Assembly: GCA_965637545.1 (NCBI GenBank)
Contig: OZ281498.1
Coordinates: 10,354,001 to 10,418,000 of the forward strand
DNA from: Phallusia mammillata
Taxonomy: Eukaryota
Direction of reading: 5' to 3'
Length of the DNA: 64,000 bases
Position numbers and translations under genes: made by a program. Shown here piece after piece: positions 10,701 to 52,700 of this stretch. The notes beneath the pieces were generated by a model that was given only the letters and a program-made list of their open reading frames with translations, did no database searches and had not been told where the DNA came from. The first letter of the stretch is position 1. Each line of letters begins with the position of its first letter.

Positions 10701-13700
10701 TGTGTAAAATTAATTCAGCGCATATTGTATACAACAAGGTAAAATAAAAACGTTTTGGTCAATTAAACCACAATAGACATTTTTGGTGTAAGAAACGTAG
10801 TGTTAACTGTTTGGCAATGTGTGAAAATTAAGCCTATAGGCATCGTTTTTTGACGAGTATGTGTAAATTTATATCAGCGTATATTGTGTCTGTGTTGTAG
10901 TTGCTTCCTTCGACTGTACACAGTAGCCAATACAGTATACATTCCTGCGTTAGCACTCGAAAATTACCGTGTTCTTCGAAACGCGCCCGCTGTTTCCGCG
11001 TCTGATTTTCCTGACGCGTGCGTAAAACGCGTCGGGTTCGGTGACGCCCGATGACGCCACGAGCCCCGGTCCCGTTTCGGCCTCGAAAGTTTTTTTCGCA
11101 TCAATGTGGTTGTCATTTTCGTCCCGTTTGGTTTCGTTCGAGTTAAGAGACAGCGACACTTGAGCGAGAAGACGAAGGGTTTCGTTCAGTTTTTCTATCT
11201 CTGCATTAGGGTTGGCGGGCACCATTACCCCCACTGACATTTTCATGCTTGGTTCGGCAATGGTTTCAGTTGCACAAAAACAGAGTTAACAAGAAAAACT
11301 AATTGTGGTTCTGTTTTACGCTGCAAAAAAATGCAAAACTGTAAAGTAAAATCTCCGAAATGCTACTTTTCCAAAAGTTTCGACCAAAATCCACAAATAT
11401 TTGGTGAAATTTGCTGGAAATTAAGATGCCACGAACGCCTACAAAACTTGATAATGCTATCGACCACTAACTGAAAGACTAAAATCAGCTGATACTTTAA
11501 AACAGAAGCGCCTAAACAGTGGGTAAATGTCCCTCTTTCAGCACCAGCTGTTACACTTGATTCCCACAGGCGGCAGCTGCTTTCGCCGCAAACTTTTCGA
11601 TGCACCGCCTAATGAGGATTGCAGTTTGGCAAAACAAGCCATTGGAGTACGGTTTCCGCCTGACACTGTGGTAAACAATCTCAAAACCTCGTACTTGTTT
11701 CCGGCAATAGCAATCACTCACGCTGTATTCTGCGGGCCGATACATTTCTGCGCACTAAGTTACTTGCCTATAGGTCGTGATATGGCGCAAAAAGCAATCT
11801 TCCACGTAGCGCCAATTTAGGGCCAAAACTCATCAAGGCGTGCCCTGCAACTCGCGGGAATTTCCAAACTAAACTTTTACGCAATATCCTTCTATGCATT
11901 GCACACAAACCATCAATTCTATATGAGTTTCTACAGAAACATGCTTTCGTTTGTCGGCTTTTAATCACGACTTTTTTGACACTTAAACCACTTTAACTCG
12001 AAACAAAATTGCCAGTAAAACGTTTATTTCATGCTACCTCCATGGCAATTTAGTTCTTATTTAAACAGGCCTTTATTATTTTAGAAAAGCAACGAAAACT
12101 AGGTACTGCTGCAACTAAAGTGGGCTAAAGAACTGAACCTTAGAGCACTGTGTCTTACTGCTTGTAAATATCTAAGAAATCGCTTTAGTGTTATCTTTCA
12201 ACTGTACTCGTACTAAACTAAGAAAGTATTTATCAGGCATATGACTACCACTTACTTGCCGGGAAACTGCAATTGCTTATTCATACATCTTGCTGTTCGT
12301 CATTATGTTAACAACTGATGACTGTATACAATTTTTGCTGTGAGCGGTTAAATCTATGCTTACTGTAGTAATTATCTAAAAACCACTGATCTTTCGCAAT
12401 GGACGAAATCTGGTTAACCGCGTTTATAAACCCCAGGGCAGCAGCGAGAGAAAATATAAAAAAGGCGGAACAAGAGAGAACACGACAAAAGAAAAAAAGC
12501 AGCATCGTGGTCAAAATTTCGTCAGCGGTTCTCGTTGGAACTTATGGTTAACCCGATTTTGCAAAACGCTAATTACCATTATCCACGTAACAATAGCGTG
12601 CCAAAGCGCAGTGCAAGTCATCTAGCTGGACGTGACGCTATAGTTTCTGCCCTTTCAAAATCGTTGCTCACAAAACGCAATCTCCAAGTCACGTCGCAAA
12701 TTTGTGCAACTACAACAAGATCAGCGAAGGTCGATTGTGATTGGCCACGAGCAAGTTTTTTTGTTGAACAACAGCCAACTAACATTTGTGGTGATTGGGG
12801 ACAAACGAGGACGACAATGACAGTTTGCAGAAAGATCAATGAGCAAAAGATTGCTCCCGGAAAAGCAATTGGTGACCAGTGGTACCCGCACCTGCAAAGC
12901 GTTGTAGAGTTACGACGGTAATTGGGATTGGCACAACAAGGTGATTCATAAACTTGACACGACATCACTGAGGAGATTGAAACTTAAACTTGAAACGACA
13001 ACAGTTTTTTTCTTCGTTATATGTTTGAACATTTCGCATCGACACTGATTTTTTATGGTTATATTCAGTACTTATGCAAATTGTAGGATACCAAATGTCT
13101 AGAAACAAACTACAAATATGTAGTCCAGCAGAACTGTTTCGACTTGTCTTACGAAAGGCCTGTGCCTCATTTCATGTCCAAAAAATTCGAAGAAAAATGA
13201 CCCAGATTCCGGAAAGACCTTCATTCGCAGAAATGGCGTTAATAAAGTGACAACACAATATCGCAAGTGGGTTAATAGTGTGAGAAGACGTGATTTCAAG
13301 GCGGTAACAGCAGGGGTGGGGATTTTTTCGAGGATGGTTAAGACGCGTCATAACGGTAACGACTTGGCTAACACCACGCCAGAGGTCGCAGAGTGCGCCG
13401 ATTTTACACCTGCCACGTGATTGGACGAGATCCGGTCACATGACTTGTCACCGAGAAGTCGCAATTCGCCATAGGACCCGTATATGTGTTAATGTGGGAA
13501 TTGTATGTCTGACCAGGGGTGGGAAAACAGAGGCTTGTAAGAAATGATGTCATTCGTTCGTTAAGTTCCATATTGGTGAAGTGAAAATTGTGGACTCTGA
13601 GCTTGTATTGGACTGACCCGAAAAACGCGGTACCAATGAGGTCATGCTTAGCAATTACCTACCAGTGCTTTGCGCCATTATTACATGGATTGGATCAAGT

Positions 13701-49700: not shown

Positions 49701-52700
49701 TGTCAAGACTCTTTGAGCCGTCAAACTTGGGTGACTCATGCCTACCGGAAATAGAACGGAAGCCAGTAGGGCTGGGCCTCAGCGTGCTCGCACTGCTACT
49801 GGTACTTAAAGTGGGATATTTAGGTCGCTTTCGCAGCAGACTACCCGGGTAGTTACTGTAGTTGGAAAGGTTCACGCCCATGCTTGTGTAGATAGAAGCT
49901 TCGTCGTCCGCGTCCTGGGCATCGTCAAATCTTGAAAACAGATTCGGGTCGCTTGCGTTCCTGTGTGACAACGCTAGCGATGAGGACGACGAATCAGAAG
50001 CCAGAGCCGCTCTGATTGGCTGATTTGAATTGTCCTCCGCGCCTGATTGACTCGCAGAAGATGAGAGCGATGACCGACTGCTGTTATTGCCTTCGTAGTT
50101 CATGTAGACATTGGCTTCATTATCAAGGTCATCGGTCGACTTCCAAGGTCGTGGTAATCCAATGCAATCAGCCAATAGCTGCTGTTTTACGCTCGACCTA
50201 CGCCTTGGTAACGTACAAAAGTTCCCTGCAGAGCTCAGGTCCATATACATATCCTCATCGTCATCGTCATGCGATGTACTTGCACCTTTTGCAAACGTTT
50301 CATTTTCTACTGGGTCGCTCGAATCTACCTGGTCTTCTTCTGCCAAATCGTCCAATGACTTGCAGGATCTCCGACGAAAAAACTTTGCGCCGAACGAAGG
50401 TTTCTTTTTAACCCTGGCATAAGCGGGCATTGGCTGTTTAGGAGAAGTTGCCATATTCGCTAAGCCAAGTCGCTATAATAATGCAAAAAAGTTCATCTAC
50501 GCAAAACACTGTTTAAGTTAGTAACTAAAAATCTCAACACAAACTTTTACTGAACGAAAAATTTAAAAGTCAACGAGAGCAGTCACTGTACAGGTCCTGT
50601 AGTGCACTGACGTCACGAACACTTTCAAGACAAGTTCCAATTTGGATGTGGGGAACGATTTTGAATAGAAGGAAACGACCTGAAGAAGTTGAAACGAGAC
50701 ATGGCCTGTGGTTTGCCGAGCGAATAACCTCATAACATCCGGCCACGATCTAACACAGTTTATTTGCCTTATTTCCTATGCTTGGTTAATGCGCCGAAGA
50801 CAAGATTACCGCGCTGTGACAATTAACCTGAATGTTGTCATATAAATAACAACATTATATACATTCACTCTTACAATAGGGTTTTGTGTATGTTTGCAAA
50901 TTGATCAAGGAAAAGCGTGTTTTTTGAATAACTGTTACAAGTCTTCGAAATACAAAAGTTTTACTGCAAAAACTGTTTCCAACGATGTGAATAATATGCC
51001 CTACATACAGAAAAACACCAAGTTATGTAATCAACGCTTGGTATGTGACAGATTTCAGTTTTACCGTGAACACAAAAATCAGTTTTTATGATAACTGGCA
51101 GTACGTCCATTTCTCGCCTTCCAACACTAAAGTTTGGAACAAAACCAATAACCATAGTCGAGAAAATATCCAATACGCAAATAGGTTTTCTGGAATAAGG
51201 GATAGTGCGTCAATACCACAAGGAGAGCTTTAGTTTGTGAAGATTGAGGGAAGAAGTTTGTCATAATAGTCATTTTATCATAGATTTAGCAACCACACTC
51301 AAAATGAAGACAACAATATACCAAAAACGCTTCTTAGGGCATTGCTAAAATTCCTCACATACAAAGCATGTGCATTCTAAACAAATTCGCCATCTACGCT
51401 GAGAACATTATAACGAATGGAACAAATAGGCCATTAACCGATATCGTTAAAGCTAACGAGGTGATACCAGCAACACCATGTGAAAGTCGTGAAATTTAGA
51501 ACACGTGGGCTTCGGTTTTCACAACTCGATACCGTAAAACAAGCTCCTGTTATTTTTATGTCGTGTCGGGCTCGTTAAGTGAACTCGAGACACGTAGAAG
51601 GGCGGACAGCTTGTGGGCGGATGCTGTAACGCGAGCGCAGGTTTAACTGCCGAAGACCGTCGCCTCTATGCCCGCCGGCAATCATTCGATCGCGATCGTC
51701 CATGCGAGGATACTAAGCAAATCATACAGACAGACGACATCAAGACTAAAACTAGGCTTGTATATAACCAAGTGTACAGGTTGAACATGGCATGTGGTTG
51801 TAACCTTAAAATTGCGAATACGGCTTTAGATCCACAGTAAAGAAAGATGCGTTTGGTGTTTATAAGGAGCTGATAGAATGGCAATTCACACGTATAGGTG
51901 GCGAAATTACGGACGACCTCAAGACTATAAAGCTAGGCTGGTATAGAACCAGGTGTTCAGGTTCAACATGGCGCGGGGTTGTGTCATTAAAACTGCGAAT
52001 ACGACTTTAGACCCACAGTAAAGAAAGATGCGTTTGGTGTTTATAAGGAGCTGATAGAGTGGCGAGTCACGCATATAGGTAGCGAAATTATGGAAACGGA
52101 ACAACACCAAGACTAAAGCTAGGCTGTTACAGAGTTGCAAGTCGGGCCGGGCTTTTCGGGCCGGGTTCGGGTTCGGGCCGGGTTCGGGCCGGGTTCGGGC
52201 TTAGGTATTTGTGAGAAAACGGGCTTAAAACGGGCCTGACTTTACGTTCCGTGCCCACCATTGTTTTTTAAATAAAATCACTCAGCTAAGCAACAATTCT
52301 CTGGCTTTGACCTAATGTCCACCCTCCTCTGAAACTATGTATTGTTTGCCCCATTGTCTACTATTGTTCATTGTGTTTGTTGTCTTTCTCTTCTTTCTCA
52401 TCCTTTGTTGCAATGGTTTCGTGGATAGGCCTGTCAATCAAAATTTCGGGCCTAAACGGGCTTTGCAAAAACGTTTCGGGTTCGGGCCGGGCTTCGGGTT
52501 TATACTTTCGGGTTCGGGCCGGGTTCGGGCTCAGATTTCGGGCCCGCTTGCAACTCTGGGCTGTTACAGAACCCGAGTATTTAACTTACATGGCATGTGG
52601 ATATAATCATTAAAAATGCGAATACAACATTAGATCCATAGAAAGACACGTTTGGTACTTAAACAAGCTGACAGTATGACAATACCCACATGCAGGTAGC

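Follow-up and report, generated by a model that had tools for sequence, protein, structure and literature searches.

A recurrent EPIYA-like tyrosine motif on three predicted alternative N-termini of a tunicate focal adhesion kinase gene

Introduction

FAK-Src signaling is a central switch of adhesion and migration, and its local shut-off is still debated. The vertebrate gene for focal adhesion kinase (FAK) contains internal promoters for FRNK and possibly for a transcript without the FERM domain, which would start in the intron before the Y397 exon (PMC1570463). Here we report the analysis of a 64-kb stretch of DNA from Phallusia mammillata (contig OZ281498.1, positions 10,354,001 to 10,418,000), in the following called the window. 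Its minus strand encodes a FAK orthologue with three exons, A, B, and C, which are read as alternative first exons and which all contain the tyrosine motif Y-A-x-V-[RK]-K. Tunicates are the sister group of the vertebrates and thus close invertebrate relatives.

An earlier note on this DNA had likened the three motif copies to ligands of the Csk SH2 domain, and this likeness held in a comparison with the published sequences of CagA, VE-cadherin, p140Cap, and Cbp. The EPIYA-A/B sites of CagA bind the SH2 domain of Csk (PMC3593179) and have the sequences EPIYAKVNKKK and EPIYAQVAKKV (PMC2768901). The same domain binds pY685 of VE-cadherin, which is located in LYAQV (PMC11550946; bioRxiv 10.1101/2024.04.17.589974), the EPLYA/EGLYA sites of p140Cap bind Csk and are Abl substrates (PMC3561454), and Cbp uses YSSV (PMC3492796). 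EPxYAxV is reported to be under-represented in mammalian proteomes and to serve bacterial effectors as a "master key" to SH2 domains (PMC3593179). According to reviews, Csk associates with phosphorylated FAK and with paxillin at adhesions (PMC10382208).

Results

The same tyrosine motif in three exons of one FAK gene

The gene, encoded on the minus strand, was identified as a FAK orthologue by its kinase motifs, the Y397-type autophosphorylation site ETDDYAEI, FAT exons, and matches to focal adhesion kinase 1 in the PDB. The first guess of an insect tensin or insect FAK gene was dropped; the sole annotated relative recovered was the ascidian tunicate Clavelina lepadiformis, whose FAT exons are 82-84% identical. 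The orthologous contigs compared were L001, L002, L003, L006, L007 (Clavelina, CAUIVY010000124.1), L008, L009, and L011, the last of which is very distant from the window and belongs to the same contig/species as L009. The three exons and their motifs are located as follows.

48093-50454, minus strand: exon A in its long form, with its own ATG at 50454 and ~787 residues up to the Y397-type site ETDDYAEI
50404-50421, minus strand: motif A, YARVKK, in the context PAYARVKKK; the tyrosine is residue 12
20250-22021, minus strand: exon B, with an ATG at 21940, 563 residues, and a phase-2 donor at 20250
21293-21310, minus strand: motif B, YAVVRK, in the context PVYAVVRKP; the tyrosine is Y211
10968-11246, minus strand: coding part of exon C, 93 residues, predicted start of a FAT-only (FRNK-like) isoform; preceded by a leader of ~70 nucleotides
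11007-11024, minus strand: motif C, YARVRK, in the context AFYARVRKI

The three copies seen in the earlier note were confirmed and lie in the coding frame of minus-strand open reading frames (ORFs), namely 48061-50454 (797 residues) for exon A, 20246-22072 (608 residues) for exon B, and 10950-11246 (98 residues) for exon C. A search of all six frames of the window for YA.V[RK]K gave exactly three matches, motifs A, B, and C, compared with an expectation of 0.07 per window when the DNA was shuffled in 1-kb blocks. This pattern was set after the data had been viewed, and two fairer post hoc tests were added. When the exons were shuffled with their composition kept, some pattern of four matching residues spanning ≤6 positions was common to all three in 17% of the trials. 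With BLOSUM62 sum-of-pairs scores, the motif was the best ungapped three-way window of the real exons at widths of 6, 8, and 10, and shuffled exons scored as high in 1 of 150 cases at width 6 and in 4 of 150 at width 8. The three-fold recurrence within this single genome is only suggestive (p ~0.01 to 0.03). Outside the motif the exons could not be aligned, as had been noted by eye before, and the three DNA stretches differ in their codons. Unalignable flanks and different codons also led us to reject an origin of the three motifs by duplication.

Conservation of the motif across species

Stronger evidence for the motif than its recurrence comes from its conservation, which the earlier note had proposed to check in orthologous exons. 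Motif B was retained throughout this comparison. In exon B of five species (the window, L006, L007, L008, and L009), 46 of ~795 alignment columns are invariant and form four islands, PSPATS, [PA][VL]YAVV[KR]K, KFK[RK]KLK, and GDxx..S.RSTDxS[DE]. Y-A-V-V-x-K is invariant in 5/5 species, and Y211 is the only invariant tyrosine of the exon. An AlphaFold2 model of exon B, calculated from the five-sequence alignment, contains a single confident helix of 57 residues (residues 92-148) and no secondary structure outside it. In the rest of the model the predicted local distance difference test score (pLDDT) is below 50, except for a small rise exactly at residues 210-216, that is, at motif B. Low pLDDT together with this rise is consistent with a disordered chain that contains a linear motif. 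Besides the motif, exon B shows a conserved basic block, KFKRKLK, and an acidic, serine-containing block, GDDDxDSxRSTDxSD. It also contains another tyrosine site:

20405-20416, minus strand: second, weaker site of exon B, YSVV (RIYSVVSSD), with the Clavelina equivalent GYSVVRKPT

The outcome was mixed for the other two exons. In exon A, the N-terminal motif was found in three of five species, as PAYARVKKK in the window (Y12), PMYACVQKK in L001 (Y12; wider context PPMYACVQKK), and PVYSTVRPK in L011 (Y10; FPVYSTVRPK), at the same N-terminal position in all three. L002 and L003 contain AKYTPVKRRP and DIYTPIHKRR in a clade-specific insert of exon A that is absent from the other clade. In the case of exon C, two of four species have the motif, and Clavelina, which keeps it, reads DACYSCVHKIRRG (CYSCVHKIRRG; YSCVHKIRRG). 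For the scoring of orthologues we used the generalized pattern Y-[AST]-x-[VI]-[KRHQ]-[KR], for which shuffling predicts 0.001-0.015 matches per exon. It was present in 11/13 sequences scored and has arisen or been retained at ≥5 non-homologous positions; the constitutive FAK exons of the window contain no match to it. The Y397 site is constitutive, and all orthologues have it unchanged. Taken together, these comparisons support selection on the motif over a match by chance.

All three copies of the window and nearly all orthologous ones combine the tyrosine with a small residue at +1 (A/S/T) and an aliphatic residue at +3 (V/I/M), as in YARV, YAVV, YACV, YSTV, YSCV, YTPV, and YTPI. Among the A and B copies, there are cases of proline at -2 with an aliphatic residue next to the tyrosine (MPAYA, PPMYA, QPVYA, KPLYA); motif C reads DAFYA, and glutamate at -3 occurs in none. 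The acidic +1/+2 residues of YEEI-type Src SH2 ligands were not found in the motif, which has R, V, C, or T at +2 and basic residues at +4/+5. The motifs used by SHP2, the immunoreceptor tyrosine-based inhibitory and switch motifs (ITIM/ITSM), have I/V/L/S/T at -2. This ITIM/ITSM type (SHP1/2, SAP) was likewise not matched, since every copy has P, A, or D at this position.

Several further observations concern the exons themselves. A Pfam scan of exons A, B, and C recovered no families. Apart from the N-terminal motif, several islands of exon A are shared by four species, among them RxCKSLD, EDxYxDL, [CG]T[LV]PRRxSSVK, [RK]PPL..SN[SD]SS, CCSPTR, and KL[RK]KKLG[NG]Y[AV]FWKP[KR]; additional sites of docking or phosphorylation are their probable function. 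Exon A of the L009 species (L011 3416-5380) contains, close to its C-terminal end and shortly before the Y397 site, the sequence PEYGVVRKIRRTSN, which is strikingly like the motif of exon C in the window; the comparable place of exon A in the window has no tyrosine. In exon C, a helix-like N-terminal block and the final GRVxKK are kept in 4/4 species. The N-terminus itself (11150-11246, beginning with MKMSVGV) is nearly invariant in the four species, and the tyrosine motif is far less well conserved.

Exons A, B, and C as probable alternative first exons of the FAK gene

The earlier note had further argued that the three exons are functional parts of one system, which agrees with their reading as alternative first exons of a single FAK gene. 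For exon B this is the best reading of the RNA data. In RNA run X5, contig 29 (1801 nucleotides, depth 33) covers 20250-22021 and is spliced from 20250 to 19449 into the shared exon X (GT..AG, minus strand); it has no joint to the kinase exons. Sample S5 of study P1 gave the strongest exon B signal. The reading phases are compatible from exon B (phase 2) through exon X (phase 2 in, phase 0 out) to the exon starting at 10351 (phase 0), with the FAT exons downstream. L006 and Clavelina share the start methionine (M-[RE]-G) and the phase-2 donor with the window, and in both of them in-frame stops and no in-phase acceptor precede the conserved ATG; ATG and donor are also kept in L008 and L009, where the ATG lies just upstream of the PPSPATS block. 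Exon B is thus best read as the alternative first exon of a kinase-less isoform. The suggestion that it forms a symmetric 1746-nucleotide cassette (21995-20250) found no support; the phases would fit in the window, but the RNA contig crosses the putative acceptor at 21995 without a joint and continues to 22021. A separate nested gene, as suggested by the annotation of Clavelina, was ruled out in the window, where exon B is spliced in frame to exon X of FAK. Exon B matched one annotated protein, its Clavelina orthologue, an "unnamed protein product" that is split from FAK; this model of 786 residues (L007 10001-13464) comprises exons B and X.

Exon A has to be considered together with two exons of the full-length message:

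59692-59821, minus strand: FERM-kinase linker exon, ending with GLMS and a phase-1 donor; 74% identical to L001 845-1180
48093-48140, minus strand: mini-exon of 48 nucleotides with the canonical Y397, forming the 3' end of exon A behind an internal acceptor used by full-length FAK

The internal acceptor at 48141 (cttttcctctcgcag/AA) has phase 1, fits the phase-1 donor of the FERM-kinase linker exon, and is the only in-phase partner of that donor. Exon A as an in-frame internal exon behind the linker was rejected, because the acceptor near its ATG has phase 0 and entry from the phase-1 donor leads to a stop. An in-frame TAG is located directly upstream of the ATG at 50454, and ORF and ATG are kept at the same position in L001, L002, L003, and L011, the ATG following soon after a stop. 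Since there is no in-phase entry from the FERM exon and the ATG is conserved, exon A is read as an alternative first exon that continues through the acceptor of the Y397 mini-exon. It would give rise to a FERM-less kinase isoform with ~770 extra N-terminal residues. An RNA search with exon A gave no more than one small putative RNA run, which contains 8% of its words, and two library-wide protein searches with exon A recovered only four relatives, all of them ORFs on unannotated contigs.

For exon C, a good acceptor ~74 nucleotides upstream of the ATG is followed by an in-frame TAA in the leader, and the donor ACG/gtaatt has phase 0 and fits the exon starting at 10351. The orthologous exon of Clavelina (L007 17709-17984, 49-55% identical) forms the start of the coding sequence of an annotated Focal_AT protein of 428 residues. 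Based on the leader stop and this gene model, exon C is a predicted FRNK-like start exon. In the annotation of Clavelina, this exon C-FAT model appears as a separate gene (L007 17715-20668).

The full-length message and the shared exons

The exons encoding the kinase domain span 36938-47621 and the shared C-terminal block spans 6307-10351, both on the minus strand. The remaining exons of the full-length message and the assembly gap are listed below.

~47508-47621, 46231-46356, 45746-45872, 45219-45456, 39293-39455, 38056-38176, 37421-37576, and 36938-36997, minus strand: kinase exons, identified by kinase motifs and by tblastn against L001 and PDB FAK chains
44816-44955: assembly gap (run of N) in a kinase intron; the exons on either side of it adjoin each other when placed on the kinase sequence of FAK
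19380-19449, minus strand: exon X, 70 nucleotides, shared and post-kinase; RNA joints and loose ends in four RNA runs
10196-10351 (PVYQPTGP), ~9645-9809, and ~8613-8774 (proline-rich), minus strand: shared C-terminal exons, identified as ORFs
~7561-7812, 6944-7243, and 6307-6534, minus strand: FAT exons, identified as ORFs; 74-84% identical to L007, L008, and L009

According to loose contig ends in four small runs, the main mRNA is joined from the exon at the end of the kinase domain (36938-36997) to exon X (19380-19449) and on to 10351, so that the canonical message skips exons B and C. The four small runs were guessed to be RNA and must be so, because a run as small as ~30 million letters contains as much as 77% of a 2.8-kb stretch. 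Exon X resembles an exon of Clavelina (L007 12808-12891).

The assembly gap is far from exons A, B, and C and touches none of them. The exon on one side (45219-45338) corresponds to residues 92-131 of the solved FAK kinase chain 7pi4, ending with FVHR, and the exon past the gap (39293-39454) corresponds to residues 128-166, from the catalytic-loop RDxAARN. Both exons are neighbors in L001, too, with the order unchanged. As judged from these matches, the gap is intronic and the predicted coding sequence is unbroken across it.

Other observations in the window

Two more Y-x-x-[VT] sites were found on the minus strand in or near shared exons, one in the exon 10196-10351, for which an RNA junction defines the start at 10351, and one in a candidate ORF at ~8859-8879; both break the rule of [A/S] at +1. 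In the intron upstream of exon B, the segment 23539-23654 shows a very high summed contig depth (55-134) in all four RNA runs, with unrelated sequence continuing on both sides and a 1-nucleotide deletion at 23634. This segment resembles part of a repeat, or part of a gene located elsewhere and expressed at a high level. Just 3' of the FAK gene, 3443-5392 on the plus strand contains reverse transcriptase ORFs (231, 108, and 386 residues) of a non-LTR (long terminal repeat) retrotransposon with an FIYADDLCLA box; the frame is broken between the ORF pieces.

Discussion

We propose that the tunicate FAK gene has three internal promoters or start exons besides the one of the full-length mRNA, and that the isoforms starting with exons B and C are kinase-less and FRNK-like and share the FAT part. 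Every isoform-specific N-terminus would present [P/A]-hydrophobic-Y-[A/S]-x-V-[R/K]-K in predicted disordered sequence; disorder is suggested for exon B by the AlphaFold2 model and for exons A and C by composition and position. The motif tyrosine would be phosphorylated at adhesions by a Src- or Abl-type kinase, and the phosphorylated motif would dock an SH2 domain that reads pY-[A/S/T]-x-[V/I], for which Csk is the best candidate. In this way, each alternative isoform could place the inhibitor of Src at the FAK/Src complex and contribute to a putative feedback loop. Csk docking is plausible, because the motif matches published ligands of the Csk SH2 domain, and the Csk hypothesis of the earlier note may still be considered the best single guess. 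To the combined reading of three start exons, phosphorylated motif tyrosines, and docking of a Csk-type SH2 domain we give a probability of roughly 0.45.

Several findings weigh against this reading. The motif is not indispensable at each site, as two species lack it at the N-terminus of exon A and two have lost it from exon C. The earlier note had named loss of the motif with retention of the flanking sequence as a result that would refute it, and this was observed in part. In L002 and L003, the ORF of exon A starts with MFTKRHCKSLD and lacks the N-terminal motif although the flank RxCKSLD is kept; in exon C, the motif is lost in L008, which has no tyrosine there, and degenerate in L009 (FYSADN), again with flanks kept. 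The related YTP[VI][KH][KR]R of L002 and L003 and the invariant motif B are a counterweight to these losses. The generalized pattern was defined post hoc, and RNA support for the start exons covers only exon B, the case for exons A and C being made from reading frames, conservation, and the annotation of another species. At +2, the peptide-library preference of Csk is K/R/Q/N, and motif B has valine there. EPxYAxV peptides reportedly bind many SH2 domains, so that specificity for Csk is not implied (PMC3593179).

The last point leads to a reading in which the motif is a phosphotyrosine dock for other or for many SH2 proteins, such as a Src-family kinase, SHP2, PI3K p85, or Crk. It would agree with the description of EPxYAxV peptides as promiscuous SH2 "master keys" (PMC3593179) and with the Y-A-E-I of FAK's own Src SH2 site, which likewise has alanine at +1 and an aliphatic residue at +3, and in isoforms B and C, which lack the Y397 exon with YAEI, the motif could act as a surrogate of Y397. 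Isoform A, however, already has Y397, and the sequence context of Src SH2 ligands is acidic, YEEI/YAEI (PMC3492796), whereas the motif is basic at +2 and +4/+5; we consider this reading doubtful. Alternatively, the motif might work unphosphorylated, as a basic-hydrophobic patch that binds acidic lipids or some other partner, as a YxxPhi-type sorting signal, or as part of a degron or of an element similar to a nuclear localization signal. The FERM domain carries a lipid-binding basic patch, which the FERM-less isoforms lack, and the motif always comes with a basic tail ([RK]K, in many cases KKK or RKIRR). In motif B, however, Y, A, V, and V are invariant whereas the basic residues alternate between K and R, YxxPhi signals operate on membrane proteins, and the basic run is too short and variable for a classical nuclear localization signal, which makes a function of the unphosphorylated motif unlikely.

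It could finally be argued that the three-fold recurrence is a coincidence and that only motif B is functional, with motifs A and C as chance matches in disordered, basic-rich sequence. The modest post hoc significance, with 17% of the shuffles sharing some four-residue pattern and 1-3% reaching the BLOSUM62 score, and the species without the A or C copy would be in line with such a coincidence. On the other hand, motif A occurs at the same N-terminal position in the very distant L011, motif C is kept in Clavelina, the generalized pattern is expected only 0.001-0.015 times per exon, and the strict motif is found nowhere else in the six frames of the window, so that we regard coincidence as quite improbable.

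Docking of a Csk-type SH2 domain, if true, would mean that a scaffold recruiting Src also recruits the inhibitor of Src, tuned by the choice of promoter, which is a simple and testable design. The exon structure suggests that FRNK-like internal promoters and a FERM-less kinase isoform are not confined to the vertebrates; the tunicate isoforms have large coding first exons. The presence of such exons, conserved, at both positions of the tunicate gene is new, as is the conserved EPIYA-like tyrosine motif common to all of them. The motif also illustrates how a short linear motif can persist through turnover, with positions differing by lineage, in otherwise fast-evolving, disordered exons. An extended version, in which a conserved PxYAxV[KR]K module on every promoter-specific N-terminus of tunicate FAK forms a Csk or multi-SH2 switch that is kept by turnover and was lost in vertebrates together with exons A and B, is tentative and in our view rather questionable.

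Compared with the EPIYA and Csk SH2 motifs of CagA, VE-cadherin, p140Cap, Pragmin (EPIYA), and Cbp/PAG, the FAK motif shares the Y-[A/S]-x-V core, the location in predicted disordered sequence, the frequent combination of proline at -2 with an aliphatic residue at -1, and the basic tail, as in EPIYAKVNKKK. It differs by the lack of glutamate at -3 and by its location on alternative N-termini of an endogenous kinase instead of a membrane scaffold or a bacterial effector. The Src SH2 site of FAK at Y397, DDYAEI, belongs to the same gene and also has alanine after the tyrosine and an aliphatic residue at +3, but its flanks are acidic whereas those of the new motif are basic. Vertebrate FRNK has a non-coding leader and a start inside a shared exon, whereas the two corresponding start exons of the tunicate gene are coding (93 and 563 residues) and add a helix, basic blocks, and the tyrosine motif. 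Like exons B and C, FRNK starts in the intron after the kinase exons, and it encodes only the proline-rich and FAT part (PMC1570463). The possible FERM-less transcript of vertebrates resembles isoform A in starting just upstream of the Y397 exon and lacking FERM, but isoform A adds ~770 residues of conserved, predicted disordered sequence with several conserved linear motifs.

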